Assembly (NCBI GenBank): GCA_004431415.1
Contig: QPMI01000012.1
Span: 1 to 31,863, forward strand
DNA from: Cyanophora paradoxa CCMP329
Lineage: Eukaryota > Plantae > Glaucophyta
Direction: 5' to 3'
Length of the DNA stretch: 31,863 nucleotides
Shown: piece by piece, positions 442-29,687 of the stretch
How positions within the stretch are numbered: the stretch's first letter is position 1
Layout: each line of letters opens with the position of its first letter
Made by a program: the position numbers and the translations under genes
Notes under the pieces: generated by a model
Told to the model about the DNA's origin: nothing
Seen by the model: only the letters and a program-made list of their open reading frames with translations
The model's database searches: none

Positions 442-484
442 GGCTTGGGCGTGTCTTATACATACTCTTCTTCTTCTTCTCTTC
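442..484 (+). mobile_element. Extreme 3' terminus of LINE family A (about 40-bp truncated copy with (TCT)n tail)
   Basis: ggcttgggcgtgtcttatacatactcttcttcttcttct matches the element termini at 8496-8531 and 10110-10147. Confidence 0.8.
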
Positions 485-2200: not shown

Positions 2201-2262
2201 GATCTCAAATGACCCAGGTTCCCCAGATTCTCCTATATATGGTGCTTCTTGAAAATAACAAT

Positions 2263-3240: not shown

Positions 3241-3510
3241 CCCCCCCGGATCTGGCGAGGCACGCAGCAGCACAGCAGCAGCAGCGCAGAGCGCGGTGCG
3301 CACTTATCCTTGTTGTGTGCTTCGTTTTGAGACTCTCCTGCCGTCTGGCACCTGCAATCTGCCGAAAGGCACCTATTCCTGTCCCTCGGACACCTATCCC
3401 TGCAGCCGCTCCCTATCTATGTGTCAATACGCCTAGCATGACGTGTTTTCCGCTTGCGTCCCTGCGCGCCCTTGATCGGCGTCTTTAAGGCGTTGGCGTC
3501 TTTGGCGTCT

Positions 3511-6016: not shown

Positions 6017-6025
6017 TGCAATGCG
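6017..6025 (+). repeat. Left target-site duplication TGCAATGCG
   Basis: Identical 9-mer at 8532-8540. It occurs only once at the orthologous position of the uninterrupted copy (6903-6911). Confidence 0.85.
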
Positions 6026-8531: not shown

Positions 8532-8540
8532 TGCAATGCG
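8532..8540 (+). repeat. Right target-site duplication TGCAATGCG
   Basis: Immediately follows the (TCT)n tail of the inner copy. The outer ORF2 resumes with LHVFVLCP. Confidence 0.85.
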
Positions 8541-10261: not shown

Positions 10262-10408
10262 AGAGAATGCAGTAGATACATCCACATCAGCAGGACTGGT
10301 CATGGGTATGACAAAGCCGCAGAGGCCTGCGGCCGGAATGGGGCATCGGCCAAGCCAGCCGAACGGTTTTGACAAAAGGCAAAGAACCAGAGGCCAAGGC
10401 ACAATCAG
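10262..10408 (-). mobile_element. Composite of a family B1 3' terminus fused to a family A 3'UTR fragment
   Basis: 10262-10345 resembles 1614-1690. 10364-10408 (cggttttgacaaaaggc...ggcacaatc) is the reverse complement of about 8444-8489. Confidence 0.6.
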
Positions 10409-10839
10409 CGCTTCTTTGTCACTTTTCTTCCTTCAAACCCTGTCTGGCCTGTAAGGAAGCAGGTTGTATAATTAGTTTATAGTTAGAAATTTTGGATGCA
10501 TAGAGGATGCATACTCAACATGATCATATGTGTATCAACATACATATTTATCTTCTTTGTATCAACCATTTGACATGCTGTGATGTTTTGGGCATACACC
10601 TGCCAAAAACCCATGCTACAGTGAAATTCTATCCTGGGCCTGAACACATCAATCAACCTTTGCATATAGTGTGCTCTTTATCCTGCTGGCCCCTAGGACT
10701 GGTGGTACAGGGTCCTGTATGCTGTTTCACTCACTTCCCTTCTAGCTTCAATTTGTCAAGAGCCACCTCTTCAATACCGTCGTATTGGTAATTAGAGGTC
10801 ATTGGTACCCCCTGCCGACGGGCGCCCTTCTAGCGAGGA

Positions 10840-11385
10840 TTCTCTGCCTTCGACGCACCTAAATGCACCTGGTTCGTGTTCTATGCATCATTCTCTACTA
10901 CTGCCCTGCTTTGCGGCCACCACATTCGAATCTCCACCACCTATCGGTTGTTCTCTGCCTGCGGGCGCTTCCTTGTTGTCAATCTGCCTTCGGGCACAAT
11001 ACGCTTGTTGTCCATCTGCCTTCGGCACAATCTCTGATAGCGGCGACCGTGCCCATTGGTTTCCCGCCACTTCCGTCGACTGTCCTTAGCGTCTCGCCAT
11101 GTCATGTTATTGCTTTTGTCCTTCAGCTGCTCTTGTAGCTCATCCATCTCCTGCGCAGTGCGTACAATCCTCATGCCTCCCAGGCGTGCTCCCGCGCCCC
11201 AGGCGTCTGATGGCGCACCTTCTGCGGACGTCGGCACACCTTTATGCACCTGCTTCGTGCCATATGCATCCGCCTGCTTCTTCGTTATGCCCGGCGGGCG
11301 CCTTGTCACTTTCCTTGTCGCCGTTTGGTTGTCGTCTGCCTTCGGACGCTTCTCTCTGACGAATCTGTCTTCGGGCACAAGACTC
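10840..11385. repeat. Degenerate dispersed/tandem repeats of tctgccttcgggcacaa inside a possible coding remnant
   Basis: The motif occurs near 10841, 10954, 10983, 11016, 11335 and 11364, with a local period of about 30-33 bp at 10954-11030. It overlaps the minus ORF 10941-11516. Confidence 0.45.
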
Positions 11386-11579
11386 TTCACGCTTGCTGAA
11401 TTTCCGATCCCGGCAGCCGCACCCGCTGGTCTCCCGCCACTGGCGTTGGCCGTATTCTGCTCCTGCCTCGTACACGCAGCGCCAGCTATGCTCCGTTCAT
11501 GTGCAGTGCTTATCATGACATGTGCAGGGCGTACGCTTCTGCTTGGTCTGCTCTTGTGGCTTTCTCACCTTTGCACCCA

Positions 11580-12310
11580 ACGGTTTTGACGAAAGGCGAA
11601 GGACCCGAAGGCCCCAGGCACAGAAGGGGGTGCACCAAAAGAACAGAAGCAGCCTTAAGGTGATCAAGAGCACGAGTTGAATGAGATTTGATATGATCCT
11701 GAGAGAGAGAGAGAAATGCAGTATGATCCTGACTGATTTGCTGGCATACTACATGATTCTTAGGAACAAGCTCAAGAAGGGAGCGCATTGAGCACTGCAT
11801 CTGAAAGTAGGATCAATGTGAGAAGAAGAAGAGTATGTATAACACACGCCCAAGCTAGCTGTACTGGGGGCTGCTATACCTTGTCACCCTGGTCCACGGG
11901 CGTGTCTTTTGCTTCATCTCTCTCTCTATTAGCTGTACTGTCTGGCCTCTTCCGATTCTTGGACTGCATGTCATCTTCCGCTCAAACTGTCTGGCCTATC
12001 GAGCAGGTCGCACTGAAGCTGCTGATACGTTTGCAATGGACCCTAATTATAAAGCACAACTGCCCTTATGCCATCTTCCAAGACGGGCTTGAAGACAGAA
12101 GAAGAAGAGTATGTATAAGACACGCCCAAGCCGGTTGTGCGGTTTTGACAAAAGGCGAAGGACCCAAAGGCCCAAAGCACAATCGACAGCGAACCAACCA
12201 GACTCTTCTTCTTCCAAGCCAGCTGTACGGGTTTGACAAAAGGAGAAGGACAGTGTATAAGAGTGCCGCAGAGGCTCCAAAAGGGACGTGCAGGGCAAGC
12301 CAGGGACCCT
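11580..12310. mobile_element. Patchwork of short fragments from LINE families A and B in both orientations
   Basis: In order: A-3'UTR(-) 11580-11620, B1 tail(-) 11700-11723, A tail(-) 11821-11855, B2 tail(+) 11866-11927, A ORF2(+) about 11935-12096, A terminus(-) 12097-12203, A UTR(-) about 12228-12250 and B(-) about 12265-12309. Confidence 0.8.
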
Positions 12311-14004
12311 CCCAGGAGGATGCATAGCTATAGAGCTCGAACCCGGCCTAGGTGCGTATACGTGCGCCAAGGGCAGATCTTTCAGGTATGAGTATTTATT
12401 TACATTGCATTTCACATGCATGGATTGAATTCTTTGAATCTTCTCAGGGTTCTCGAATCTACTCAGGATTCTTAGCTCCAGTCCTGACTGTTCACTACAG
12501 AGTGAAGATCTTCAAATCTATCAACCTCTTGAAGTTCCTTGTAGCCTGGGAGAGACTTGTGGTTGCCCGAGGCAGCATTCAAAGAGCCATATAAAGCGCT
12601 TCCAACAGGGGCTTGATTAAGCTCGAGAACGTGCCTGGATGAAGGTCCTCAAGAACACATCCAGCTGCATTACATGAAAAAGTCAAGGTTAATTTATTTC
12701 TCTACAAGAATTTCAAACCTCACCCTGGAGCTGGAGGCTCTCAAGGCCTGGAACTATGTTGAGCTCAATATCTGGTTGTCCAGCCTGGATTCGTCCACTT
12801 GCGTGGTGGGATGCACTTCAACTGAGCAAATTCCAACACAATTATCACACAGAATCGCCACTCTTATAAAAACGACCCACCTTGCTTGTGAACTTGTGTG
12901 TTAATGTCAGCAGTACTGTTCAAGGATGTTAAATTAGGGTTCCCCAGCAGAGGAAGCTCCGGGCCGAGGCGGGCAAGCTTGTTCTTGAAGATGTATGTGT
13001 TGTCTTCATCGAGCTGAAATTGAACCCCTGACATAGAGATGACAGAGTTAGATCATGGCTTGACAAGTGATTGGCCATGAATGCACGTGCACCGGAAGCT
13101 TGAACAGTTGAATCAAAATCTTGAGGCATGGAGTTGTCAGGCTATACTTGCGTTTCTGAGGTCCTGACAAGAGAGGCAAGGGAGCTGGAGCATACTGTTC
13201 ATACTGTTGGAGCAGTAAATGGCTGATGCAATTTGAAGTTGTGCAAAGTGGCATGATTTCACCGGTTCCTTGTCATTAGTAAATACTTGTTGGTGGTCTT
13301 CGAATTGCTCTGAGTCCTCGGAGTGTGTCCCTGATAGAGACATATCAACAACACAGTAGAGAGCTATATATCTGTAGGAGGCATGATTACCTGTACTCAG
13401 ACTGTCAATATCTGCTGGCACCATGCCCTCACTCGAGTCTTCATCAGAGACATCATCTAGATTAAAGTGCATGTTAAATGCTGTCAGCCGCAATCACAGG
13501 TGTGCTCAAGCAAGAAGTGTGTGCACCAAGGGGCACTACTGAAGGCACATCCCTGCCTGGTCGCCATGTGCATTATCGTCATCTGATGCATATGAACGAT
13601 GGATGTGATCAGATCCCTTTCCGGAGCAGAAATTCAAAGACGAAGAAAGGCCCTACCTTGACCTGCAGCTGGGTCAATGTTGACTCCCTGTTGGACTTCG
13701 AATTCTGAAAAAAACACAATGTAAGTGGTAAAAACGTTTGCATAAAAGTGGATGGTGAGGGAAGGAAAGGCACCCAAAGCCAGCTGGCTCTGCAGCTGTG
13801 GGTTCAAAGCCTGAAGCTCGTGGTTCTGCCAGAGAGCCTCTTCTGTAAAGGATACAGTCACGAGGAGGCTTACACTCACGGAGAGGATCTAGAGTCAAAA
13901 AAGAGAACGAAGACGGGGACAAATTAAGCAGCTAGTGGCTAGCGGCCTTTGGAGATGGAAAATAGGAAGAAAACACAGGGCACTGAAAAAGGGAGCAATC
14001 TAGA

Positions 14005-14860
14005 AGGCCAGGGCCAGAGTAGCAGGGCCTGTAGTTGGAAGGGAGGAATAGCCCAGTGGGACTCAGAAAGGGAGGGGCCTCAAGCCGCAGTAGACAGCAC
14101 ATGCTCCTGGCTAGCAGAGCACAGGGCCTGCTACCAGGGCCTGCAGCTGGAACTGCTCATGATCATGGGCGTCCAGAAGAAATGGCCCAGTGGGGCTCAG
14201 AAAAAAAAGGGCCTCAAGCGGCACTAGAGGGCACATGCTCCTGGCTAGCAGCTGCAGAGTAGCAGGGCCTGCAGCTGAGACTGCACGTACTTGGCCTCCA
14301 GGAATGGCCCATGGCCAGTACTAGTGGGGCTCAGAAAGAATGGTGCCTGAAGGCATGGCTGAGGCAGGCTCATAGCTAGCAGAGCTGCAGGGCCTGAGAC
14401 TACACATGGGCCTCCGGAAGAAACCGCCCAGTGGGGCTTGGCACAGGGGGACATGCTCCTGGCTAGCAGAGCACAGGGCCTGCAGCTGAGACTGCACATG
14501 GGCCTCTGGGAACTCGGAGCGGCCCAGTGGGGCTCAAAAAGGAAGGGCCTCAAGTGGCACTAGAGGCACATGCTCCTGGCTAGCAGAGCAGCAAGGCCTG
14601 CAGCTGAGACTGCACATGGGCCACAGGGAACGGCCCAGTGGCCTGGGGCTCAAAAGGAAGGGGCCTCAAGCGACACAGGGGCACATTTTCCTGATTAGCA
14701 GAGCAGCAGAGCCTCCAGGAATGGCCCAGTACTAGTGGGGCTCAGAAAGAATGGGGCCTGAATTCGAAGGCATGGGCGGAGGCAGGCTCGTAGCTAGCAG
14801 AGCTGCAGGGCTGAGACTGCACATGGGCCAGAGCAGCAGGGCCTGAGACTACACATGCAG
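14005..14860 (+). repeat. Degenerate minisatellite, about 7-8 units of about 95-135 bp
   Basis: Recurring cccagtggggctc (near 14052, 14186, 14315, 14427, 14523, 14634, 14725), gcacatgctcctggctagcagagc and gggcctgcagctgagactgcacatggg. Confidence 0.85.
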
Positions 14861-15049
14861 CTAGCTGTGTATGTGGTTGGATAGAACAAGCACAGTATCA
14901 GACAGACAGATTTATCGAAGGAAAGCTACGAAGAAAGAAAACAAGACACAGATCTACAGAATACATATGCATAAGACAACAAGCAGAGACAAGCAGAGAC
15001 AAGAGAGACATCCAGTTGCCCAGGAAAAGGAACAGGGCCTCCAACAAAG

Positions 15050-15118
15050 GAGAGGGGGGGGGAGGGGGGGGTGCTAGGGCCGGAGGATTGGAGGGGGGGA
15101 TTGGAGGGGGGAGGGGGA
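15050..15118 (+). repeat. G-run cluster (G-quadruplex-capable)
   Basis: More than four runs of 3-9 G with short spacers. Confidence 0.6.
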
Positions 15119-15146
15119 ACCTAGCCAGTGATGTGGCAGGCACTTT

Positions 15147-16132
15147 TCATAGGGTCACTTGACCATCCCTGGCCCCCCCTAGATCTAGATATATATCGAA
15201 GGGGTTCCAATGTTCTAATGCTGGAGCAGCCACACGCATCACAAAGAATGAAGAGAGATTACCAGTGCTGTCCAAATCGAACTTCCAGATGGCCTCCACG
15301 ACAAGCACCCGCGAGTCACAGCCAACAAGCCGGTAGCTCCCCAATGGGTTCTTCACTGCAAGCAGCAGACTGCAGCATTGAAGTTCATGATCAGGCATTG
15401 ATTGCGAGTGCCAAAAGGGCTTCGAGTAAACAAGTGCACCGGTAGCAGAAGAATTCCTTTGAGGGTCGGTTTCCCTGGCTTGTACGGTTGATGTGCCGGT
15501 CACACGTCCATCGGCAGGAACGACGAGATGGTCCCGGCCACGGTCGCCCTCACACTTCTCCTCGGACATACCAGGGCCTGCATCAGTCTTGAGAAGGTCT
15601 GGATCGGCTTTCTCTGCGCATGCCTCCTCTGAGCACGCACAGTCAGCAGCGGTACAGCAAGTGGATGATCATGAGCTGGAGAGCGCTGACGGAAACGAAC
15701 CGATGGACTGCGGGGTGCGAGGCTGTAGGGCTCTTCAGGCGCTGGACCAGAACGACCATCTCCTCGCCCTCCAGGAGCTTCGGCTCGGCGTGACCTGCAT
15801 GGCGCGCGCGCGCGAGTGAGCTTGGCACGCGTGTGCACACCCGCCAGCCGCGCGCACCGTAAACCGTGTCTCGAGTTGCTTGCTTATGACAAAACAGCAC
15901 CGCCAGTAGCCCTAATCGCCCCAATGACTTTCTGGATGACGGAGAAGGCTTTGACGGCTCTGGGGCTCTTCTTCGCCCGTTTCTCGGCGAGGAACAACGC
16001 CAGCGGCTTGATGGGGGTGGCGTGCGCATTGCGAAGCTGCGTCGTGCCGGCCGGGATCCCGTTCTCGGCCTCGGCCTTCAAGAGCATCCGATGGCGGAAC
16101 GCGAAGTCGATCTTGTATTGAAGCTCAGCCAT
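15147..16132 (-). CDS. Hypothetical spliced gene or pseudogene, unknown product
   Basis: ATG at 16132 gives MAELQYKIDFAFRHRMLLKAEAENG...GAIRATG. Donor GTGCTG (about 15901) joins in frame to acceptor gctcac...catgcag|GT CAC GCC GAG CCG AAG (GHAEPKLLEGEEMVVLVQRLK). A further branch/acceptor (gctgac...ctcag) lies near 15630. The 3' end is uncertain and I recognise no family. Confidence 0.35.
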
Positions 16133-16407
16133 TCCCGCGCGCTCGGCGGCCCGGACAGTGCGAAACTACTTCTGCTTGCCGTCTGATGCGATCGCGGCCC
16201 AGCGAGATGCGGCTCAAAGAAGATCTCGCCAGGCAAATGTGTGGGGAGGGTACGACTGAATCACAACTTAGGGTACCCGATTTCGATCAGGCTCATGCGA
16301 GTAAAACAAACCCACGTTTGTTTTTCGACCAACGAAGTTCCGATTGGCTGGCGGCGTTTCGAATTGAAAATTAAAATTAAAATTAAAGAATTAACTCGAC
16401 TTCACTC

Positions 16408-16712
16408 TTAATTTTGCATAAGCAACTCGCGATCGATATCGGCCGCAGTCAACTCGCGATCGAGCTCGCGATCGGCCCGCGCTCATATGCATGCCATGAT
16501 GATCAATTTGCAAATCGTCCGCGGCGCCGGAGTATACTATACCGGGGGTACGTACGTAGGCCTGCACCTGCGCATGCGCCATATGCCACGTGCACCGGTA
16601 CCTGCATATGCATGGCCATGGTGCACAGCTGCATGCGCAGGCATGAAGGAAATCAAAATTAAAGGAGACCTGCTCTACTACACTATGATAGCTAGCTATC
16701 ATAGTGCATATA
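16408..16712. repeat. Island saturated with overlapping short palindromes, ending in a 26-bp perfect palindrome
   Basis: Near-continuous 6-10-bp palindromes. Inverted pairs at 16408-16416/16654-16662 and 16567-16577/16631-16641. cactatgatagct|agctatcatagtg at 16681-16706. Confidence 0.85.
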
Positions 16713-16774
16713 GGGGGGCCGACTCGCTGCCGAGGTGCCCGCCCCACTCCAGGTCGGGTCGGGGGCGGAGCTGA

Positions 16775-17571
16775 CTATCCTGAGAGGTAGCGCTGGAGGG
16801 ACTCTCCCGACATCTCCTCGAGGAGCTTGATGGCGCGCCGCACCTCCGCCTCCACCCCCGCGTCCGCGTCCTCCATCAGCTCCGCCAGGAACGGGATGCT
16901 CTCCGGCAGCAGCACGAGGTACTCCTCGCCCACCCGTGCCGCCACCACCTCGAAGCACCGCAGCGCCGCCGCCCGGATGACGGGATCCTCGCTCCGCGTC
17001 GCCATCAGCAGGGCATGGTTCAGGGGCTTCCACAGCGCCTGTGAAGAGAGTCAGTGGCCGCCGAGTGTGGCTGCGGGGGCAGTGGTGGACGCACGTCGGA
17101 GCCCGCTGCCATGGCCATCTCTGCCAGGCAGGGCGCCAGGAGCGTCTCCACCCGCGCCTCGTACGGGCCCGTCGCCGGCCCCGCCTTCTCCTGCCCCTCC
17201 TTCCCCTTCTCCTTCTTCTTCTTCTTGCCCTCGGAGCTTGCGCCGGCGGCTGGCGCCGGACCGGAGGCGGCGGCCGCCGCCGCGGACGGGGCGGGGGTGA
17301 CGTCGGTGTGCTGGAGGAGGCCCACCAACGCGGGCATCATCCGATCAAAGCGCGCCTGCGATACACAGCGTTAGGCCCGTCCTAGGCGAGCAGGTGGGCG
17401 GGGGAGCGGGGGGAGGGGGGGGGGGGGCGGAGGCGGGAGGGGGGGGCGGAGGCGGGAGGGGGGGGCGGAGGCGGGAGGGGGGGGTAGGGGAGGGGGGCGG
17501 GGCGGGGGGTTAGGGAGAGAAGGGCTTGAAGCAGGGGGTTGGGCGAGGAGGGGAGGGCGGAAGGGGGGGAG

Positions 17572-17607
<36 letters not shown>

Positions 17608-20600
17608 GCGGGGGGGGGGGGGGGATGGCAGGTGGGGGACGGGAGGGAGGGAGGGAAAGAGAGGAGATGGGCCGACAGACCTGGGTGGTGAAGCCCGTCG
17701 CGGCGGCAGCGTCATGCCGGAAGCAGAGGAGCAGCGCCTGCAGCGCCAGGGCGATCACCTCGTCCCGCGCCAACCGCTCCGGGTCCACAGCTGCGGAGGA
17801 GGCCGCCTGCTTGGCCGCGGAGGCTGGGGCCGCGGCCTCCCCCTTCTTTGCCCGGCGGCGCTTGGCCGAGGGGGGCTCGCTTGAGAGGGCGGCCTCGGGG
17901 GCGACGGTCGCTGCCGCCGGCGCCACGTTGGCGTCCCCGACGAGCTCCACCTCCCCAGTGAAGTGGGCAGCCGTCGCCTCCCACACGTGCCCGAAGAAGG
18001 GGACGAAGATGGCCTTGAGCCGCTCCGCCAGGGAGCCGAGCAGCCGGTAGAAGGCGATGGCGCGGTTCGGGTCCGCGCGCTCGCCGGAGCCCGAGCTGGA
18101 GCCGGCGGGGAGGGCGGAGGCCCAGTCGAGGGCGCGGAGGAAGAGGGGCCGGAACTCGCGCTCGCTGAGCTTCATGACCAGGGAGGCAGCGGCGGAGGAG
18201 GCGGCGGCCTCCACCGCGGGGGCCTGCTCGGCGGGGAGGCTCGGGCGCAGCTCGAGGGCGCGCAGGATGAGGTCGAAGGCGGGCCGGTGCAGCGCCGCGG
18301 CGTCCAGCCGCTGCATCGAGGCGCAGCAGGCGCCCGTCGCCTCCAGCAGGCGGATGACGCCCTCGGGCCCCGCCTCCGCGGCGCGCGGGAGGGCGGCGGC
18401 GAGGGCCGGGAGGAGGAGGCGGGGCGGGACGCGGGCGGCGGCGGCGGAGAGGAGCGCCGCCGAGCGGTCCAGCAGCGCCTGCTGGCCCGAGGCGAGGAGG
18501 CGGGGGTGGACGCAGGCGGCGAGGGCGTCCGGGAGGTGCGGGCCGAGGAACTGGGGCACCGTGCTCACGAGCGCCTCCATCGCGGCCAGCGCCGCCACCG
18601 GCAGCACCGCGGGCCGCCCGCCTCGCCGCCCGCCGCGGCCGCGGCGGCTTGGGCTTGGGCTGGGGCCTCGAGGGAGCGGGCGAGGGCCTTGAGGAGGGGC
18701 GGGAGGCGCGGGGCACGTGGGCACGACGCGGGGCCCGAGCTCCACGGCGAGCGCCGCGAGGGTCAGGAGCGCCGAGGCCGCGAGCGCCTCGCTGGGCCCC
18801 TCCAGCGCCGCGAGGACGCGCGGGACCGCCGCAACGAAAGGCTCCGGGCGGCGCCCCGCGAGGCGCCGGGCCAGCTGCTCGACGGCGAGGAGCGCCGCCT
18901 GCGCGTTGCCCGCCCGCTGCGCGACAGAGCGAGCTCGGCGATCAGAGAGAAAGAGAGGGAGGGAGGGAGGGAGTGAGGGTGGCACCTCGGAGGAGGCGGC
19001 GTGGGAGGGGTGCCCGTCCTCCTCGAGGACGCGGAGGGCGGCGGGGAGCAGCGCCTCCAGCGCCGCGTCGCCCTCGGGGCCCTCCGGCGTGTGGCCCACC
19101 CGCTCCGCCAGCACCTGCGCGGGGAGACCGTGAGCCGCGGAAGAAGAAGAAGAGGCGGGGAGAGGCTGCGCTGCGTGCCTGGAGGGCGCGGCGGCGGACG
19201 GCGGGGTCGCTGTGCGCGAGGAGCGCGTCCATGGCGGAGGCGAAGGGCGCCGGCGGGAGCAGCTCGACGGCCCGCGCGAGCGCCGAGCCGGCCGCCTGCG
19301 CCAGGGCCGCCCCGTGGGCCGCCGCCGCGGCGCCGGGCTCCGCGGCGGCCTGGAGGGCGGCGGCGCGGCGGAGGGCGAGGAGGGCGGCCTCGAGGAGGCG
19401 GCCGCAGCTCGCCTCGACGGCGGCGCGGGCGTCGGCGGGGCCTCCAGCAGGGCCCGACGAGGGGCCGGCTCCCAGCACGCGGGCGGCCAGCTTGAAGGAC
19501 TCGAGGGCGAGGGCGCGGCAGCGGGCCGGGCCCAGGGTCGCCGGGTCCACGTACTCGGGCACAAGGGGCGCCTCGGCGGGGGCGGAGGCGGCGGCGGCCT
19601 CCTTCTCCTTGCGGGCGCTGGCCTTGCCGCTGCCCTTCGCGGGGGCGGGCGCCGCCGCCGCGCGGTCTCCGGGGAAGCCGTCGGGGAGGGGCAGGACGGC
19701 GCGGTGGAGGAGTGTGGAGAGGGCGGCGGCGGCGGCGCGCGGGCCCTCGTGGAGGAGGAGCGCCGCCGCGAACTCGGGCGCGTCGAAGCCGGGGGCCGGG
19801 GCGGCGGCGAGGAGGAGGAGGAGGGCCGGGGGCAGGGCCGAGGCGGACCCGAGGGTGCGGAGGAGGGTGGAGAGGAGCGGGAGGCGGCGGTGCGGGGCGG
19901 TGCGGGGCACGGCGGAGACGAAGGCCTCGAGGAGGGGCCGCGCCCCGTCGGGGCCGTGCGCCGCCAGCACGGGGACGACCCGCTCGATCGTCTGCGTCAC
20001 CGCCGCGAAGGTCGCCGCGTCGTCCGCCGAGAGGGAGGCCGGCCCCAGGACGGCCGCCACGGGGAGGACGTGCGCCAGGACGCGGTCGGGCGCCGCCTCC
20101 GCGAGGCCGGCGAGGAGCAGCAGCGCCGCGTTGCGCGTCTGCGGGTCCGCCGCGCCCTGCACGCAGAGCACGACGGCCTCCACGTCCAGCGCCTCGGAGG
20201 GGGCCGAGCCGCCCGCCGCGCACTCCCGCAGGCTCCCCATGCACAGCTGCTTGAGGTACTCGGGCGCCGGGCCCTCCGCCTCCTCGCCCTCTGCGGCCGC
20301 CGGGCGGGGCCGCAGGAGGGCCCGCAGAAGGGCGAAGAGGGGCGGGAGGAGGACGGGCGCGCCGCCCGCCGCGACGGCCTCGCCCGCCTTGTACTGGAGC
20401 ACCTCCAGCGTCAGGGCCGCGCCCCGCAGCGCCACGCCCGAGGGCGCCGCGGCCGCGCCCGAAGCCGAGGAAGCGGGGCTGTCGGGAGTCTCCTCCGCCT
20501 TGCGCCGGGCCCGCTTGGCGGCCGAGGGCGGCGGCGTGCGCTCGCAGCGCCGGCGCCGCCGGCGGCGAGGCGGAGCGGGGCGGCGAGGGCCTCGGGGGGT

Positions 20601-23600
20601 ACGGGGAGGGCCCGCAGGGCGCGGTGGACGGCGCCGGCGCACTCGGGGGCGGCTTCGCTCCCGAGGAGGGTGAGGAGGGCGCCGAAGACGGCGGCCTGGC
20701 GGGCGGCCGGCAGCGCGGCGTACCAGCCGCCGGCGCCCTCGAGGGCGGCGAGGGCGTCCAGGCGGACCGAGACGCGGCCGGGGAGGTGGTGCCGCCCTGC
20801 GGGACGGCCGCCTCGGCGGGGCTCGCGAGGAGGCCGAGGAGGGCGTCGAAGAGGGCGCGCCCTCGTCCCCTCGAGCGCTCCGGCCGCCTCCGGGCGGAAG
20901 GCGACCGCAGCGACGGCGGAGAGGAGGCGGGCGTCGCCGGCGGCGGCGGCCGAGGCGGCGGCGGCGGCGCGGGGCCGACCTCCTCCAGGAGGGGCGCCCC
21001 GAGGGCGCGGAGGGCGGGGGCGGGGCGGGCGGCGGCGAGGGCGGCGAGGAGGGCGGCGCGGGCGTGCCAGCCGGCCGGGCCGTCGAAGCGGAGGGCGAAG
21101 GCCGCGAGGAAGTCGACCACGTCGCCCGCCACGTCCGACGCCGGCGCCTCCCTGCGAGCGAGCGGGCGGCGAGGCTCAGGCGAGCAAGCGGGAGCAGGCG
21201 GGCGGGCGGGGGGTACGCACTTCTTGCCCCTGCGGGCGGACGGGGGCGGGGCCGGGGCGGCGAGGCGCTCGGCGAGGAGGCGGGGCAGGGCGGCGGGGTC
21301 GGCGGCGAGGGCGTCGGGGCGCCGGCGATGACGGCGAGGAGCGCGTCGAGCGCCGCGTCGCTGGGGCCCTCCGCCGCGCACTCCTCCTGCGCCGCGCCGC
21401 GGCCGCCCTTGTCCGACGCCGAGGCCGCCTTGCGGCTGGAGCCCTTGCGCGCGCTGCCCGCCGCGGCGGCCGCCTTGGCGCGCGCCCGCCGAAGAAGAGG
21501 TGGAGGGGTGGGGCGGCGGCCCCCGCGGGGCGGCGGGGGCGGCCCCGGGGCGGCCGCCGGGTCGATGGCGAGGCGGGTGAGGAGGCCGAGAGGGCGGCGG
21601 CCGGCTGCTCGGCGGCGGCGGCGGCGAGGCGCCCTTCAGGAGCGCGGCGAAGGCGGCGGCGGCGCGGCGGACGGGCCGCTCGGGGCCGCCAGCGCGACGC
21701 AGGCGGCCGGGAGGAGGCGGGCGGCGGCGGGCCCCAGCGCGGCGCGGGAGCCCGGCTCGGCGCGGGCGGCGGCGGCGGCGGCCTCCTGGGCGAGCTGCAG
21801 GCAGCGCACGCGCACGTTCGCCGGCACCTCGGCCGCTGCGGGGCGGGGCGTGAGCCAAACCGAGCCGGGCGGGAGGGGGGGGCGGAGGCGGGGCGCACGG
21901 TGGGAGGCGATGAGGAGGGCGAGGAGGTCGAGGAGGCGCCCGGGGGCAGGGTGCGGGCCACGGCGTCCACGCACGAGCGCGCCTCGCCCTCGAACGAGGC
22001 CGCCCCGCACAGCCCCGCCACCAGCTCCTTGAGCACCGGCAGCGCCGCGCCGGCGGCGGCGGCGGCGGAGAGGGGCGCGGCGGGGGCCGGGAGGGGCGGG
22101 AGGCGGCCCAGGGCCGCGCGAGGCCGAAGAGGAGCGCCTCGCGCTCGGCGTGCGCGGCGGCGGCGGCCGCCTGCGCCGGCCGCAGCGCCCCGCACCCGAA
22201 GAGGGCGGCGAGGGTCTCCAGGGGCGGCAGGCCCTCGGCGGGGGCGAGCCCCGCGGCGGCCGCGCGGGCGGCCTTGAGGCAGGGCCGCCGGCGGGGCCGG
22301 CGGCGGGGCCGTCTCCCAGAGGCGCTGGAGGGGGGCCAGGAGCGCCGGGCGAACTCCACGGCGGTCCCTGGGTACGATGTTAGGCGGGGGGCGGCTCGGG
22401 GGCGGAGCGCGGGCTCGCACGGTCATCGTGGGCCTCGGCGGCGGCGCGGGCGAGGGCGAGGGTCGCGAGGGCGGCCGCGGGGCCCGTCCCGGCGGCGGCG
22501 GCGCGGCGAGGGGCGGGATGCAGGCGTCGGGGTCGGCCGCGGCGGCCGCGGCGAGGCGGCGGATCAGCTCGACGTTGACGCAGAGGCCCTCGGCGCGCGC
22601 CTTGCACGTCGCCCGGCGGCCGCCCGCCTCCCCGCCCTCCTCCTCCTCCTCCTCCTCCTCGCCGACGCGGCGGCGGCGGCCTCGGCGGCGGCTCGAGGGC
22701 GCCCTCCAGGCCTCCGAAGAGGCGGCCGGCCCGCCGAGCTCGGCGAGCTCGGGGCCTGCTGGACGCAGGCGCGGCTGAGCTTGGCGGCCGCCGGCGTCCA
22801 CGGGAGCCGCTGCAGCAGCAGGCGCGCCGCCTCGGGCGCCGACTCCGGTGGGCCTTGGCCACGGCGCGAGGGCGTCGGCCGCCGCGGGGCTCGAGCCGGC
22901 GGGTCCCGCCAGCGCGGCGAGGAGGTCGTCGGCTTGCAGAGGCGGGCGAGGGCGGGGTGGCGGAGGGCGCGGCGGGCGACGCGCGGCTCCTCGTCGGCGG
23001 CGCGGCGGAGGAGGGCGAGCCGAGCGCCTCGGCGTCGCCGGGGGCCGGGTCCTCGGGGACGCGCTCGAGGGCCGCCAGGCGCACGCCGGCCTCCGGGTGC
23101 TCGAGGCGAGCAGGAGCGTCGTGCCGGCCCCGCCCGCCACCGGCTCGTGCCGCGTGCCGGCCAGCGTGCCCGCACCAGCTCGAAGACCCGCTCCCGCCCC
23201 GCCGCCGCCTGGGGCCCTCCGAGGGCGCCGCCGCCGCCTCCTTCTTGCCCCGGCGGGCGGCGGGGGGCGGCGCCTGCGCCCAGGGCGGAGGCGATGGCGC
23301 GGTCGAGCTCCTCGGGAAGCGGAGGCGAGCAGTTGGAGGAGCTCCCCCGAGACCTCCTCGTCCGCCCCCGCCCGCCCTCGCCGGCCGCGTGCCGCGCGAG
23401 CACGGCCGCCGCCGCCGCCTCCGCGTGGGGCCGCAGGGCGGCGGCCGGGAGGCCCTCGGCGAGCTCGCGGAGCAGCGCGCGGTAGTTGGCGTGGCGGTAG
23501 CAGTGCTCGACGAGGTGCGCCAGGAAGGGGCCGAGGAAGGCCCCGATGGCGTGCCGCTCCGAGAGGGCCGCCAGCGCCGGCGCCAGGCCCGCGAACTTGC

Positions 23601-24872
23601 TCGCGAAGCGGAACGCGTTCACCGAGAGCGCCCCCGGGCCCTGCGTCTGCGCCCCGCGTCGGGAGGCCGCCGAGAGACCGGGGCCAGGAGCGAGGCGCAC
23701 CTCGCAGAGGAGGACGAGGCAGGTGAGGGCGGCAGGGCTGTCGGCCGCGTCCTGCGGGGCGTGCTTCGCCAGGAGCTCCCCGAGGGTCGCCACGCCCTTT
23801 GCGTCCAGCGGCGCCCTCGTCGCGATCGCCCCCAGGATCATGTACGCCGCACACTGCGCCGCGGCGCGTCAGGCGTGGCGCGGAACGCAGAGGGGGCGAG
23901 GCGGACCTGGAAGTCGGCGTGCCCGAGGCGCGGAGGCGTCGATGACGAGGGGAAGGACGCGGGAGACGAGGTCCGGCTGCGGCCGCCCCACGCGGTGCAG
24001 CACCTCGACCACCAGAGCCACGGCGAACGAGAACGAGGTCGCCCCCGCCGTGCCCGCGCCCACCGCCGCCTGCGTCTGCGCGTCCTCAGCGCCCCGCTCG
24101 CACGCGTCGCGCGCGCGCGAACGGCGGCGGCGCCGCGCACCGACTCGCAGACGAAGGAGAGCAAGCCCTGGTTGCGGATGCACTCATTGACTAGCACCAC
24201 GCGGCTGATCGGCGTCACCGGCCCGTCCCGCTTCTGCTGCATGCCCTCCAGGAACGCGAACATCGTCCCCCTGCGCCGCACGCGCTCAGCTAACGCGGCG
24301 CGCTCGTGCGGCGCCAGGCGGGGCGGGGCCGCACGGCAGGCGCAGGATCTGCACGACGCGGACGAAGATGTTCGTCTCGTGGTACGGCAGGATGCAGCGC
24401 ATGACATCGTTCACGTTGTACTCGTTGACCCTGCGCGCCGGGGGCGGCCTCAGCTAAGCCCCGCGCAATGTGATCGCGATGGGGTAGCGCTGCATGCGCA
24501 CTTGAAGCGGCGAACGAGGTACTCGAAGACGCGGTGCGCCGGCTTCTGCAGGAAGTAGTTGCTCAGGAGGCGCAGAACGCCAGCGATCGCGTCGTCCAGC
24601 TTCTTGTTCTCTTCCTTGGTCTGCAGCTCGCGGTTCGTCTCCTTCGCCTTAGCGCTGAACAGCGAGCGCTCATACTCCTGGAAGCGCGCATCTAGCTTCT
24701 CAAGCTCCCGAGGCCGCCGAGGCCGAGCGAGTGGATGCTCTCGAGATCGAGTTCTGCAGCCTCCTGGGGCGTGAAGAGGATCGACGCCTTGCCGCGGAGC
24801 CAGGGATCGGCGCCGGCCGACCGCCGCCTTGGCGCTCAGGCCGGCGAGCTGTCGCGCTAGGTCGGACGCCAT
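16775..24872 (-). CDS. UTP10: U3 snoRNA-associated protein 10 / HEAT repeat-containing protein 1 (multi-exon)
   Basis: N-terminus MASDLARQL...LFSAKAKETNRELQTKEENKKLDDAIAGVLRLLSNYFLQKPAHRVFEYLVRRFK|VNEYNVNDVMRCILPYHETNIFVRVVQIL. BP28CT-type segment LVMKLSEREFRPLFLRALDWA...RAIAFYRLLGSLAERLKAIFVPFF. C-terminus WKPLNHALLMATRS...LLPESIPFLAELMED...GESLQRYLSG*. Many short introns. Internal frameshifts are probably sequencing errors. Confidence 0.95.
17395..17660 (+). repeat. Poly-G / (gggggggcggaggcggga)n tract in an enlarged UTP10 intron (17356-17680)
   Basis: The intron is bounded by CAG|GTCTGT (17680) and cctaac...cgcag|GCGCGCTTTGAT (17356). It contains G runs of more than 30 nt and three approximately 18-bp units. 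Confidence 0.75.
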
Positions 24873-24981
24873 TTGTACCCCCTTAAACTTCGTCCTCTGG
24901 GGTGTTGCCACTCCACTACGTACCCTTTTGCACCACGTAGCAGAATCGAGTTGGACGGGCCTATTACATGATTGCGGGGCC

Positions 24982-25079
24982 CGTGCCCAAATCCGCTTTG
25001 GGCACGTCGGGGCTAGGGCGGCGTCGTGCCCAAAGGCCTGGCACGGCGGGTAGAGCAGCGTCGTGCCCAAGTCGTGCCC
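24982..25079. promoter_or_regulatory. Cluster of CGTGCCCAA motifs in the divergent UTP10 / gene X intergenic region
   Basis: Forward copies at 24982, 25025, 25062 and 25073 (partial). Inverted copies at 24997-25006 and 25039-25045. The cluster lies 110-210 bp upstream of the UTP10 ATG. Function is inferred only. Confidence 0.35.
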
Positions 25080-25602
25080 GCGATGGCGGGAGAGCAGCCT
25101 GGCAGCGCGGCAGGCGGGGGCGTGCAGGCTCCAACTATGTGGTCGTTCTGTGTGTACTTGCATAGCGAAGTTGGCAATCCAGCGGAGTGCTTGCCGACGA
25201 TGGGCAACATGGTCCCAGCACCGCTCATACCGTCGGCGGAGCCCATATTCAGGAAGCTGGTAGACAGGAAGCTTCTTCGTCCGGAGATACAGCAGATAGA
25301 TCAGCTGCGCTTCTGGCAGTGCTGGCGGGGAGCTACTGTGCGACTCTATCATGACGTGCGAGTCGTACTGCCGCGTGCAAGCAACGCCGATCGACTGATC
25401 TGGACTCGGGCATGCGCAGGAGTTCGCCGTGGTGGTCGAGGGAGGGCCCGTTACCCTCATCGTCGCGCCGGCCAAGTAGTGCAGCCCGACCTGGCGCACT
25501 ACTGCCGGTAACTTCCGGTCGACAGAAGCAGCTTGCGACGACTAGAAGGGAGCGCGCACGCATATCTAGACCAGCCGCGGTCTTTCGGACCAGCGCGCAT
25601 CC

Positions 25603-26828
25603 ATGGAGAACGTCAAGCGCACCACGCTGCCCGCTGGCGCAGCGCCGTTTGAGGCGTTCGAGGAGGAATTCAAGAAGGCGCTGAAGACCCGGCGAGCAAA
25701 GGGAACACTGGCACGGCAATCGAGCGGGTCCGCTCGCTTTCGGTGATGGTCCTCGCGCGACCGACGCCCGGCGGCGCCGCGCGCAGACATTGTTGAAGCT
25801 CGGCTATTCGGATGTTAGCCTCGAGAAGCTGGAACCCGGTGAGCGGCCGCGCCGGCGCGCGCTGGGCGCCGCGCTGGCGCTGCGCGCGCATGTGCTGACC
25901 CGATGCAGCCGAGATTCTGCGCCAGGACGTTTCAGCCTACACGAAGCAGGTCATTCTCGGTCTGCAGGTCCGCTCAAAAATGCCCTCGCGACGCGCGCGC
26001 GCCGCCGCCGGATCGCGGGACCGGCCCGGCGGGCCCGGGACGAGATTCGTGCTGAGGCGCGGGCCGCGGGGCCGGGGCGCAGGGGAAGGCGCTGGTGACG
26101 AGCTACACGAACCCGCCGCAGCGCGTGCTGCTGGAGCAGATGGAGCTGAAGGAGATCCCCCGCAACGTCTTCTCGACCATCCGCAACCCGGACCCGGCGC
26201 AGCCCTTCGTCTTCTACCAGGCGACCAGGAAGGTCCAGCCCACCCCGGAGTGCCGCATTGACGACTTCGAGAAGATCTGCATCGACACCATGGCGCGCGC
26301 GCCCCTGCGGCCGCACCCCCGCCCCGGGCCCCGCCGCGCTCACCGCACGGGCCCGGGGCGCGGGGCGCGCAGAACGTGGCGGCGGCGCCGCTGCTGCCGA
26401 TCGCGCGGGAGGGCGAGCAGGCGCGGGTGCTCGACGGCGAGGCGGCGAAGAAGTACGGCGGGGCGGAGCTCATCGTCGCCGGCCGCATCACGGCGCGCCC
26501 CCGACCCCGCAGTACCCCCCTCTTCTTCCCCCCGCTGACCCGGGGCGCCGAGCAGCTGATGGCGCCGGAGGTGGCGCTGGCGGAGGCGAAGGCGGCGGCG
26601 GGGCAGGGCTCCTCCTCCTCCGTGCCCCAGGTCCGCCTCCTCGCCCCCGCCGCCTAGGTCTGGGAGCCGGGGCTTCGGGATCTGTCGAGCACCGCACTGC
26701 CCGGCCCCTCCCTGCCCGCCTGGTTCGGGGCCCCCGCTCAAACTCCTCGCGCCGTGCGGCAGGGGCGGGCGACGGCGCACGACGCGGCGCTCGTGCTCGC
26801 GACCGACGAGGCCGGCGACGCCATGCAG

Positions 26829-26862
<34 letters not shown>

Positions 26863-27345
26863 CCCATCCGATCCGAGCCTCCCTCCCCGGCCGCGGCCCG
26901 CGCCTTACGCCCTCGCTCCCGCTCCGCGCCAGGTGGTGATCGGGTCGGACCCGGACTTCGTGCTGAACACGCTGCGGGACCAGAAGCGCCTCGCCTCCGT
27001 CGAGGCCTTCCTCTACCTCAAGGTGCCATGGGACCAGCTGGCCCTAGTAAATGGAGCTCAGAGTTGGATCCAGCGCTAGCTGGCGCGGCGCTTGCGAGGG
27101 CCGCCACTCTGACTCGGGGCGGGCCCCGCCCCCCGCGCCCAGGCGGAGGAGCTCTCGGCCTCCGAGCGGCGCGACGCCGTCTTCATCAAGGTGCTGCCCC
27201 GTGCATTTCAAGAGGAAGCTCTCGCTGAGGCCTCTCTCTCTCCCAGGTGTGGCCCGTGGTGCAGCAGATCCTGCAGGCGACGGGCCAGACCGAGCGCCTC
27301 GCCGCCGGCCGCGAGCGCGCCGCCCGCCTCGGCATCACCAAGTAG
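25603..27345 (+). CDS. Gene X copy 1: hypothetical protein, 10 exons, about 310 aa
   Basis: Exons 25603-25727, 25787-25838, 25909-25967, 26083-26292, 26373-26492, 26556-26630, 26763-26828, 26933-27022, 27143-27190 and 27247-27345. Exons are much better conserved than introns relative to copy 2, and the phases are compatible. One 1-bp indel in exon 1 is corrected by the consensus of the two copies. Two introns have GC donors (26293, 26493). Confidence 0.8.
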
Positions 27346-27404
27346 TGGGCAGCTCGCTCCGTTCTTCCTTTGAAAGGACACGGGACCGGGAGACTGCGCT
27401 CGAG

Positions 27405-27640
27405 CTGGATAACCTGCGCACGCCGCGGCTCGATCTAGCTCGCGCGCCCCGGGCCCGGGCCCGCGCGGCGCTGAGCCGCGGAACTCTCGCCGCTTTCGGC
27501 GCTGGGCGCTCCGCGGAAGCAAACCTTTGGCTCGCTGTTAATCAGCACGCAGCGCGCCTTTCCGTCGCGTCGATGAAGGAACGCGCGAGTCAGCGGGGCG
27601 TCGGACTCGAACCGCCCCAGCCCAGGCCCAATGAAGCGGA
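27405..27640 (-). pseudogene. Deleted remnant of zeta-tubulin (exon 2 region plus upstream flank)
   Basis: 27405-27593 aligns to 31384-31558 (still encodes DGKARCVLINSEPKV) and 27596-27640 aligns to 31819-31861. The equivalents of 29635-31383 and of exon 1 with the ATG are deleted. Confidence 0.85.
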
Positions 27641-27850
27641 TGCGCTCGTTCTTCGATTCAGAGCTGCACAGGGCCGCCAGCGACCGTAGCGGGGAGCGTG
27701 ACTTTTCGGTGCACGTGGGTACGGCACGCGTACGTCTGATCGAACCGCTTCTTTCAGGTCTATCCTCTCGAAGGAGCGCGCAGTGTTCTTTCAGTAAGAA
27801 GAAAGCGCACACGCAGATCTAGACCAGCCGCGGTCGTTCAATCATCGCGC

Positions 27851-29578
27851 ATGGATGGACGTCAAACACTGCCGCTAGCGCTAGCGCCGCGCCGTTCGAG
27901 GCGTTCGAGGAGGAATTCAAGAAGGCGCTGAAGGACCCGGCGAGCAAAGGAACACTGGCACGGCAATCGAGCGGGTCCGGCCGCTTTCGGTGATGGTCCC
28001 TCGCGCGACCAAGGCCCGGCGGCCGCGCGCAGACCTTGTTGAAGCTCGGCTATTCGGATGTTAGCCTCGAGAAGCTGGAACCCGGTGAGCGGCGCGCGCC
28101 GGACGCCGCGAGGGCGCCGCGCTGGCGCTGCGCATGCGCGCGCATGTGCTGACCCGATGCAGCCGAGATTCTGCGCCAGGACGTTTCGGCCTACACGAAG
28201 CAGGTCATTCTTGGTCTGCAGGTCAGCTAAAATGCCCTCGCGACGCGCGCGCGCCGCCGCCGGACCGGGGGACCGGACCCGGGACGAGATTCGTGCTGAG
28301 GCGCGGGCCTGCGGGGCCGGGCCGGGGCGCAGGGGAAGGCACTGGTGACGAGCTACACGAACCCGCCGCAGCGCGTGCTGCTGGAGCAGATGGAGCTGAA
28401 GGAGATCCCCCGCAACGTCTTCTCGACCATCCGCAACCCGGACCCGGCGCAGCCCTTCGTCTTCTACCAGGCGACCAGGAAGGTCCAGCCCACCCCGGAG
28501 TGCCGCATCGACGACTTCGAGAAGATCTGCATCGACGCCATGGCGCGCGCGCCGCTGCGCCCGCACTGCGGCACCCCCGCGCCGCCGCGCTCACCGCAGG
28601 GGCGCGGCGCGCGCAGAACGTGGCGGCGGCGCCGCTGCTGCCGATCGCGCGGGAGGGCGAGCAGGCGCGGGTGCTCGACGGCGAGGCGGCGAAGAAGTAC
28701 GGCGGGGCGGAGCTCATCGTCGCCGGCCGCATCACGGCGCGCCCCCGACCCCGCAGTACCCCCCTCTTCTTCCCCCCCGCCGCTGACCCGGGGCACCGAG
28801 CAGCGGACGCCAGCTAAGGCGGCGTGGGTCCGCCTCCCCGCCGCGGCGTCCTAGACCTGCGGAGCGGGGCTTTAGGGGGCCGGATCTGGGGAGCCGCCGG
28901 CGCCGATCCTTGGGAGACGTCCGCCCGATATCCGGGACCGCGAGCCTCGACGCGGCCTAGGGGACCAGGGGACTACTTCGCATTCCCCAGGCCCCCTCTG
29001 CCCGCCTCGCTCTCACGCTCTCACGCTTCTCCTCGCCCCGGGTGGCAGGGGCCGGCGACGACGCACGACGCGGCGCTCGTGCTCGCGACCGACGAGGCCG
29101 GCGACGCCATGCAGGTCCCGCCCCGCCGATCCGAGAATAGGACTCGCCCCTCCCCGGCCGCGCCACGCCCCTCACCCCGCCCCAGGTGGTGATCGGGTCG
29201 GACCCGGATTTCGTGCTGAACACGCTGCGGGACCAGCAGGGCCGCGCCGCCGCCGAGGCCTTCCTCTATCTTAAGGTAATGGGGCTTAGAGTTAGATACA
29301 GCACTGGCGCTGTGCTTGCGATGGCCGCCCCTCTGACTCGGGGCGGCCCCTGCCCCCGGCGCCCGGCTCGCCCAGGCGGAGGAGCTCTCGGCCTCCGAGC
29401 GGCGCGACGCCGTCTTCATCAAGGTGCTGCCCCGTGCATTTCAAGAGGAAGCTCTCGCTGAGGCCTCTCTCTCTCCCAGGTGTGGCCCGTGGTGCAGCAG
29501 TTCCTGCAGGCGAATGGCTGGGGCAAGCGCCTCGCCGCCGGCCGCGAGCGCGCCGCCCGCCTCGGCATCACCAAGTAG
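27851..29578 (+). CDS. Gene X copy 2: paralogue of 25603-27345
   Basis: Same exon-intron structure and near-identical core exons (SYTNPPQRVLLEQMELKEIPRNVF...). Exon 6 is shortened in frame to 24 nt (28804-28827, RTPAKAAW). Stop TAG at 29576-29578. The start may be 27851 or 27855, and there are indels in exon 1. Confidence 0.75.
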
Positions 29579-29687
29579 TCGGCAGTTCGCTCCGTTCTTT
29601 CTGTGAAAGGACACGGGACCGGGCGACTGCGCTCCAACCCGAGGTCGGGCTCGGATCGGGCAGCTGAGATGAGGAGGCGGGCGGGGG

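Follow-up and report, generated by a model that had tools for sequence, protein, structure and literature searches.

Closest described systems

The footprints of plant CACTA elements (En/Spm, Tam1, and Tpn1) combine a variable-sequence 3-bp target site duplication (TSD), additional bases where the element had been, and flank bases copied in inverted orientation. To our knowledge, the flank hairpins invoked for this superfamily rest on the plant footprints themselves and not on biochemistry. Opening of a hairpin leaves loop-less palindromic additions, the P-nucleotides. Short template-switch (quasi-palindrome) mutations make local inverted repeats in one step.

Excision by hAT, Transib, RAG, and MULE transposases seals the flanks as hairpins (PMC5499845). 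At V(D)J coding joints and in hAT, Transib, and MULE repair, off-center hairpin opening followed by end joining gives loop-less additions of variable length (0 to 4 nt), together with trimming and other additions (PMC5499845). For PIF/Harbinger elements of the mPing/mJing type, which have 3-bp TSDs at TWA targets, pairing of TSD-derived ends is reported to guide empty-site repair (PMC4561436; PMC6850418). The outcome is mostly precise restoration or a mixture of deletions and insertions, and mJing footprints fall into 11 types, many with deletions (PMC6850418).

We analyzed a 31,863-nt stretch of the Cyanophora paradoxa CCMP329 genome (contig QPMI01000012.1, positions 1 to 31,863; here, the window), in which a triplet X recurs in the expanded form X.rc(X).X, where rc(X) is its reverse complement; we refer to these nine-mers as scars. 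The scars share with plant CACTA footprints the variable 3-bp TSD, the extra bases, and the inverted flank copies explained by hairpins, but they are near-uniform (exactly 3 palindromic nt, or C plus 3 nt plus G) and are fixed at several per kb, in arrays, with the element absent from the window. They resemble V(D)J, hAT, Transib, and MULE products in their loop-less additions and differ in that the palindromic addition is as long as the TSD, presumably since an identical triplet on each flank allows the two to anneal. With mPing/mJing-type elements they would share a 3-bp TSD and TSD-derived pairing in repair, whereas X can be any triplet and the gain is a 6-nt palindrome. Template switching, in contrast, copies a nearby preexisting inverted template at variable length and produces neither a direct-inverted-direct unit fixed at 3 nt nor C..G bases that stay constant. 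A sequence-only reading of this DNA had raised the prospect of a possibly undescribed process; none is needed, as the hairpin/P-nucleotide route already supplies the chemistry, and what looks new is the uniformity and density of the scars. In our search of the literature, in which older plant work was thinly covered, we found no published account of an X.rc(X).X scar that is uniform across a genome. High GC and many introns of 59 to 74 nt are in keeping with the description of C. paradoxa in PMC6704402, which mentions neither palindromes nor transposons.

Excess of scars with 3-nt arms

The window contains 105 exact X.rc(X).X nine-mers, compared with 33 ± 7 in Markov simulations (order 1 to 3, in 2-kb blocks), and 84 versus 19.7 expected once (NN)n runs are excluded; together, scars make up about 1.7% of the sequence. 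GC-rich parts of the window hold many GC-only chance nine-mers. In the lower-GC half (positions 1 to 17000), 44 to 46 scars were observed versus about 4 expected (46 versus 4.3 ± 2.1 in the Markov comparison; ~11-fold; z of ~20). Composition-matched arrangements in the same interval were far rarer (X.X.rc, 7; X.rc.rc, 6; X.X.X, 9; versus 44 for X.rc.X), an enrichment of 4- to 7-fold.

The excess is confined to one arm length: arms of 2, 4, or 5 nt showed none in the window, P-tracts of 1 or 2 nt were at expectation, and the base that would extend the P-tract to 4 nt was present at 8 of 30 one-spacer sites, which is the chance level. A variable P-length series was therefore rejected as a description, since the 1-, 2-, and 4-nt forms are unenriched, as was general palindrome enrichment, given that six-mer palindromes as a class exceed expectation by just 5 to 8% and X.X.rc and X.rc.rc are flat. 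Forms one change away from X.rc(X).X were also in excess (156 versus 103 expected), as expected if older scars decay.

In every scar rc(X) abuts X with zero spacer and without a loop. At least 15 triplet classes serve as X, most commonly CAG/CTG, GCA/TGC, and ATG/CAT, and CA/TG-containing triplets account for 32 of 44 (29% expected), a bias partly inflated by copies. This bias is unexplained and counts against reading the scars as excision footprints.

Scars as derived insertions

Polarity was assigned from an alignment of seven tandem-repeat units, supplemented by pairwise alignments of paralogues. Each long form in the tandem repeat occurs in just one or two of the seven units, and it is therefore the derived state; taken together, the two kinds of alignment identify at least seven sites at which the long form arose by a 6-nt gain. 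The individual sites are as follows.

14249 to 14257: CAG to CAGCTGCAG (CAG.CTG.CAG), 6-nt insertion in one of seven units; unit alignment, also in short-read contigs
14309 to 14317: CCA to CCATGGCCA (CCA.TGG.CCA), 6-nt insertion in one of seven units; unit alignment, also in short-read contigs
14317 to 14325: AGT to AGTACTAGT (AGT.ACT.AGT), 6-nt insertion; unit alignment, also in short-read contigs
14760 to 14768: GAA to GAATTCGAA (GAA.TTC.GAA), 6-nt insertion relative to the sister unit at 14326 to 14432; unit alignment, also in short-read contigs
14639 to 14646: TGG.CC.TGG, 5-nt variant that fits a 2-nt palindromic addition; unit alignment
12044 to 12052: TAA to TAATTATAA (TAA.TTA.TAA), 6-nt insertion that the copies at 7181 and 8810 lack; pairwise alignment
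28129 to 28137: TGC to TGCGCATGC (TGC.GCA.TGC), clean 6-nt insertion relative to the paralogue at 25880; pairwise alignment
27874 to 27882: GCT to GCTAGCGCT (GCT.AGC.GCT), probable 6-nt insertion relative to 25633; messy pairwise alignment

All of the strings listed by the sequence-only reading, among them the near match tgg.tca.tgg at 10297, are present where it placed them, and its central claim of recurrent expansion is borne out by both the excess over Markov nulls and the paralogue-polarized insertions. Its cases at 14249, 14309, 14317/14728, and 14760 proved to be 6-nt insertions in the seven-unit alignment, as did that at 12044 in pairwise alignment; the AGT.ACT.AGT at 14728 to 14736 and that at 14317 probably go back to a single insertion, which a higher-order duplication then carried to the second place. 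The insertion proposed at 27874 is plausible, with the messy alignment to 25633 leaving it less clean. At 14639, the proposed near match is a real 5-nt variant of a class (2-nt addition) with no overall enrichment in the window, and at 27076 the string ct.ag.ct is there, as a net difference of 4 nt in pairwise alignment. The claimed iterated ccc.ggg expansion at 27448 to 27462 had to be dropped: it differs from 31412 just by substitutions and a 1-nt indel. The TGC site at 28129 was absent from that earlier list. The insertion at 14309 to 14317 sits within an older TGG-C-CCA-G-TGG-like site.

Short-read contigs from three independent DNA runs (2012, 2019, and 2024) show zero substitutions and only 1-nt differences relative to positions 12120 to 17000, and the inserts there are present in all three, so the scar sites in that interval are real and not assembly artifacts; absence from independent reads had been named beforehand as grounds for doubt. 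A contig of one run (X19) is identical to the window over 12000 to 12100, which spans the 12044 site. No 6-nt scar polymorphism was seen between runs, which appear to represent one strain, and no filled allele (X-element-X) was found at a scar site in the contigs of four runs.

We consider it highly improbable that the scars reflect chance, composition, selection for palindromic hexamer motifs, or assembly artifact. The window comes from a long-read assembly that is unpolished and contains numerous 1-nt deletions, and the GC-rich parts of the window do yield chance matches; these points are set against a z of ~20 in the lower-GC half, flat composition-matched controls, a near-normal count of six-mer palindromes, events that are insertions relative to paralogues, and the agreement of three independent short-read assemblies.

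Genomic setting and clustering

Scars are concentrated in introns and in intergenic or promoter DNA, with densities per kb of ~2.4 in exons, 7 in introns, and 23 in promoter spacer, and none has arisen in 2.5 kb of repeat copies that are 92 to 94% identical. Such uneven density is easier to reconcile with targeted insertion than with mutation acting uniformly, although part of it could come from selection or from repeat copies having diverged before inserting. Exonic scars add two codons, in frame. Four features define the setting.

13843 to 15262, minus strand: 1,420-nt intron with a 115-bp tandem repeat and ~12 scars; intron taken from a spliced record of run X22
16408 to 16662: 11 exact scars plus one C..G variant (a "polylinker"), in intergenic/promoter DNA upstream of a minus-strand gene
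16681 to 16706: perfect 26-bp palindrome CACTATGATAGCT|AGCTATCATAGTG with CACTA...TAGTG ends, adjoining the preceding cluster
27400 to 27900: spacer with a third local cluster (GTGCACGTG, ACGCGTACG, AGATCTAGA, and GCTAGCGCT) in the assembled sequence, separating tandem duplicates 25544 to 27401 and 27797 to 29634

The polylinker at 16.4 to 16.65 kb is 28% scar. Collapsing its scars in silico shortened the interval from 260 to 188 nt and uncovered two nested sites where none was expected. The adjoining 26-bp palindrome occurs once in the window and lacks a 3-bp TSD. Of five scars, three fall no more than 3 nt from a splice junction, a marginal tendency (P of ~0.03 by our own estimate). An introner origin was considered and rejected for the nine short introns of the minus-strand gene, which are ordinary GT..AG introns without shared sequence.

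Search for a responsible element

No element with terminal inverted repeats (TIRs) and a 3-bp TSD was found in the 32-kb window, a result that says little about the genome. Scans for TIR-plus-TSD pairs returned only GC-rich chance pairs, and those CACTA/TAGTG pairs that had TSDs spanned short intervals containing exons. Twenty open reading frames (ORFs) in the window gave no significant Pfam match, the best signal being a sub-threshold SBP (17.8 bits versus a cutoff of 27), and an exact look-up of the repeat-encoded ORF at 8331 to 9662 was without match, probably owing to the 1-nt errors of the window. The choice between transposon turnover and a repair pathway had been left undecided; the evidence favors a transposon, and since the window holds no 3-bp-TSD element, we infer its link to the scars.

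Which superfamily would be responsible is constrained just by TSD length and one terminal nucleotide per end. The same footprint chemistry acting in another 3-bp-TSD superfamily (for example, Academ- or Zator-like), or in several families, would accommodate the coexistence of two scar types, with one family producing the 6-nt scar and another the 8-nt C..G scar described below. We regard this as quite unlikely, as C...G ends fit CACTA...TAGTG and the TWA requirement of PIF/Harbinger, which X does not follow, excludes that superfamily; just one site (12044) is TAA/TTA.

The C..G variant and proposed mechanism

Among the 16 spacer combinations, only X-C-rc(X)-G-X was enriched (14 versus 3.25 expected), and the reverse control, with a G..C pair, was not (2 versus 3.7 expected). 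One instance could be polarized.

26022 to 26032: CGG to CGG-C-CCG-G-CGG, 8-nt insertion relative to the paralogue at 28273; paralogue alignment

The C and G are constant whatever the X, which points to the terminal nucleotides of one element and not to generic repair. One C and one G are recovered in this way, and nothing further of CACTA/TAGTG.

We propose, with a probability of roughly 0.7, that a cut-and-paste element with 3-bp TSDs and C...G ends, CACTA-like, left the 6-nt insertions as footprints of its excision, formed through hairpinned flanks that anneal. Judged from these bases, the element would most likely be of the CACTA/EnSpm type, with 5'-C...G-3' ends. Each direct copy of X measures exactly 3 nt, which is indirect evidence of a variable-sequence 3-bp TSD, the element itself being gone. 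Insertion would create X-[element]-X, and excision would seal each flank as a covalent hairpin. Opening of the hairpins 3 nt from the tip would give one flank a 3' tail that ends in rc(X) and the other flank a 3' tail that ends in X. Since X is identical at the two flanks, the tails would be fully complementary over these 3 bp, and fill-in and ligation would yield X.rc(X).X. If the first nick fell 1 nt inside the element, the terminal C and G would become unpaired hairpin tips, giving X-C-rc(X)-G-X. Successive rounds of insertion and excision within introns and promoter/intergenic DNA could build arrays such as that at 16408 to 16662, new insertions perhaps being favored by palindromes from earlier scars.

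If TSD-derived tails anneal, stereotypy at the length of the TSD is to be expected, and an inverted copy that abuts X without a loop fits a covalent hairpin and not snap-back priming. The near-uniform scar, set against the heterogeneous footprints known elsewhere, requires an additional assumption, either selection by annealing or a fixed opening site.

Break repair independent of transposons would take one of two forms: a host nuclease (e.g., a domesticated transposase) making 3-nt staggered, hairpinned breaks or an end-joining polymerase adding a templated inverted copy at ordinary breaks. The window without an element, a product far more uniform than classical plant footprints, and clustering in DNA that resembles promoters and is probably open, a setting in which breaks are common too, all speak for such repair. 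Yet a plain hairpinned break would give X.rc(X) followed by unrelated sequence, and the second X requires a 3-bp duplication, the hallmark of transposon integration; moreover, the constant C/G of the 8-nt form is hard to derive from sequence-independent repair, and snap-back synthesis requires a loop, of which none is seen. The two forms together thus appear unlikely, and 3-nt-arm specificity, loop-less addition, and the constant C/G favor a transposon over a lineage-specific repair pathway.

Implications

A further reading, conceivable but doubtful, is that the scars, rather than being idle leftovers of routine transposon turnover, come from an insertion-excision or hairpin-nuclease system that reinforces itself by returning to its own palindromes and that the host may have co-opted. 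If so, promoter and intron DNA would be built de novo as overlapping arrays of palindromic hexamers, exons would gain in-frame two-codon insertions, and the lineage would have a distinct, dominant indel process.

If the excision-footprint reading is correct, the genome would preserve past cut-and-paste transposition in a form that can be read and counted, each scar standing for a single insertion and the excision that came after it. Rates of excision and preferences for targets would then be directly estimable, as would the share of intron, promoter, and coding sequence written by transposon repair. For annotation, in silico removal of scars may restore older reading frames and repeat relationships. 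The uniform product would also amount to a testable statement of mechanism, hairpinned flanks plus annealing of TSD-derived tails, for a superfamily whose excision chemistry is so far deduced from its footprints.

Excess of direct-inverted-direct nine-mers

Nine-mers in which a triplet X is followed by its reverse complement and then by X again (X.rc(X).X) occur 105 times in the whole window, against 32-35 ± 7-8 in Markov simulations of order 1 to 3, run in 2-kb blocks to preserve local composition. The sequence-only reading had proposed that such strings are recurrent 6-nt insertions; every string that it listed was found where it had been placed, and the phenomenon proved stronger than that reading had stated. 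With dinucleotide runs left out, 84 nine-mers were observed versus 19.7 expected, and in the lower-GC half of the window (1-17000) the figures were 46 and 4.3 ± 2.1. Once corrected for repeat copies and overlapping hits, an estimated ~37 independent sites in these 17 kb compare with ~4 expected.

Arms of 2, 4, or 5 nt showed no excess in the same block Markov test, and six-mer palindromes as a class were just 5-8% over expectation. Across 1-17000, controls of the same base content stayed near background (X.X.rc, 7; X.rc.rc, 6; X.X.X, 9) versus 44 for X.rc.X. Nine-mers differing from X.rc(X).X by one change were also in excess (156 versus 103), as would result from the decay of older sites through substitutions. 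Triplets containing CA or TG (CAG, GCA, CAT, CAC, TCA, CAA, and CCA) were over-represented in this half (32 of 44, versus 29% expected), a bias partly due to copies, and many of these putative insertion scars consequently create CANNTG or TGNNCA hexamers.

Polarity of the insertions and support in independent runs

The seven aligned units of a 115-bp tandem repeat (14058-14845) served as the reference for polarity. Five gains were found, each confined to one or two of the seven units:

14249, CAG to CAGCTGCAG
14309, CCA to CCATGGCCA
14317 and 14728, AGT to AGTACTAGT, in two units
14639, TGG.CC.TGG, a 5-nt gain
14760, GAA to GAATTCGAA

Because the long state is restricted to one or two units, it is the derived one, as had been proposed. 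The two AGT gains are probably one event, since both units belong to one higher-order duplication, and TCATGATCA (14157) is likely a further gain in the repeat. Elsewhere, pairwise alignment bore out the reported gain of TAA to TAATTATAA (12044), added a clean one of TGC to TGCGCATGC (28129), and made that of GCT to GCTAGCGCT (27874) plausible. An iterated CCC.GGG run at 27448, previously listed with these, is no insertion relative to 31412. Among the indels separating the 92-94% identical copies of 5143-10146, which are mostly 1-nt differences, none had the X.rc(X).X form.

Contigs from three DNA runs of the same organism (2012, 2019, and 2024) span 12120-17000 with zero substitutions relative to the window, and these short-read contigs independently contain every palindromic insert of that interval. 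No 6-nt polymorphism was seen among them over the interval, the runs appearing to represent one strain. Across the 5 kb of 12000-17000, single bases present in the contigs of the three runs are missing from the window at 35 places, and the differences (12 of 35 listed) are single inserted bases only, indicating that the window is an unpolished long-read assembly with frequent 1-nt deletions, in which reading frames are therefore unreliable.

Distribution and nesting of the scars

A fourth run (X22), which is spliced, reveals an expressed minus-strand gene that spans 12383 to about 16231 and is dense in introns; these have canonical GT..AG borders and measure 59-74 nt, with a further one of 1420 nt. 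Its larger exonic open reading frames gave nothing significant in Pfam, the only match being a sub-threshold one to SBP. The features relevant to scar distribution are as follows:

13843-15262, minus strand, 1420-nt intron containing the 115-bp tandem repeat
16408-16662, scar cluster within the 470-bp spacer upstream of the gene
27.4-27.9 kb, third local cluster, in the spacer between tandem duplicates

Scar density in and near the minus-strand gene (our count from the nine-mer list and run contigs; expectation, ~0.25 per kb)
Exons: about 2.4 per kb
Introns: about 7 per kb
470-bp spacer upstream of the 5' end: about 23 per kb

When each X.rc(X).X in the 16408-16662 cluster was collapsed to X, 260 nt shrank to 188, and two more sites became visible only after the first collapse (chance expectation, none), so that some scars sit inside older scars. 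Within 12383-13842 of the gene, three of five scars (13084-13092, 13586-13594, and 13697-13705) lie ≤3 nt from a splice junction, which is statistically marginal; one of the three reads GTGCACGTG on the minus strand and starts precisely on a donor GT.

A second form with constant spacer bases

When the 16 possible spacer pairs of X-a-rc(X)-b-X were counted, C..G alone stood out (14 observed versus 3.25; G..C control, 2 versus 3.7). At 26022, CGG to CGG-C-CCG-G-CGG is an 8-nt insertion verified by a paralogue. In the tandem-repeat unit, three later gains of 5-6 nt arose at an old site resembling TGG-C-CCA-G-TGG. Shorter palindromic tracts of 1 or 2 nt (X.c3.X, X.c3c2.X, and mirror forms) were at expectation, and palindromic extension to 4 nt was at chance level (8 of 30). 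There are thus in essence two products, 3 nt and C+3+G.

Candidate elements and nearby features

No element with terminal inverted repeats and a 3-bp target-site duplication (TSD) was found in the window. At 16681-16706 lies a perfect 26-bp palindrome, CACTATGATAGCT|AGCTATCATAGTG, with arms of 13 nt and CACTA/TAGTG at its ends; it has no TSD and no other copy in the window, and it directly adjoins the scar cluster. PIF/Harbinger was excluded as a source, X not being TWA. At 12097-12203 (also at 8425-8530 and 10039-10145, inverted), contig depth is about 4,000-20,000, versus 20-60 in single-copy flanks; this segment of 107 bp, which terminates in (TCT)n, forms the 3' end of a repeat with a few hundred copies. 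In the region 17000-24500, about 7 kb at 75-84% GC, there are GGC-type repeats and a tract of poly-G/GGGGGAG (17396-17655); all six phases contain long open frames, and these had no Pfam match.

Proposed hairpin opening and the probable origin of the scars

A loopless inverted copy directly next to its template is the mark of off-centre opening of a covalently closed hairpin (P-nucleotides), and the hairpin model is a long-standing explanation of transposon footprints in plants. The chemistry proposed for the scars is this known route. For hAT, Transib, RAG1, and MULE transposases, hairpin formation on the flanks has been documented; host enzymes open the hairpins, and end joining leaves footprints (PMC5499845). 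The footprints of documented 3-bp-TSD elements differ from the uniform scars here: those of mJing are of 11 types, with deletions, and keep a single TSD in about half of events (PMC6850418), and mPing excision is reported to be mostly precise (PMC4561436). In the literature searched, thin on older plant papers, a uniform X.rc(X).X scar at such density across a genome was not described, and a description of Cyanophora paradoxa mentions neither palindromes nor transposons (PMC6704402).

The sequence-only reading had left two options, turnover of a 3-bp-TSD transposon or a lineage-specific break-repair pathway. The former is best supported, at a probability of roughly 70%; as neither an element nor a filled site is seen, we infer this origin. 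The 3-nt direct arms would be the TSD left by a departed element, its flanks joined with an added inverted copy. If the opening lay 3 nt from the tip in both flank hairpins, their 3' tails would end in rc(X) and X, pair perfectly because the flanks share the TSD, and yield X.rc(X).X upon fill-in; opening one hairpin alone 3 nt from its tip would give the identical product. Such opening and pairing of TSD tails would make the palindromic tract equal in length to the TSD. If the first nick fell 1 nt inside the element, the C that terminates its left end and the G that terminates its right end would remain unpaired at the tips, and X-C-rc(X)-G-X would follow by the same route. That C..G is constant whatever X is argues for the ends of one element and against sequence-independent repair, and it fits CACTA...TAGTG termini.
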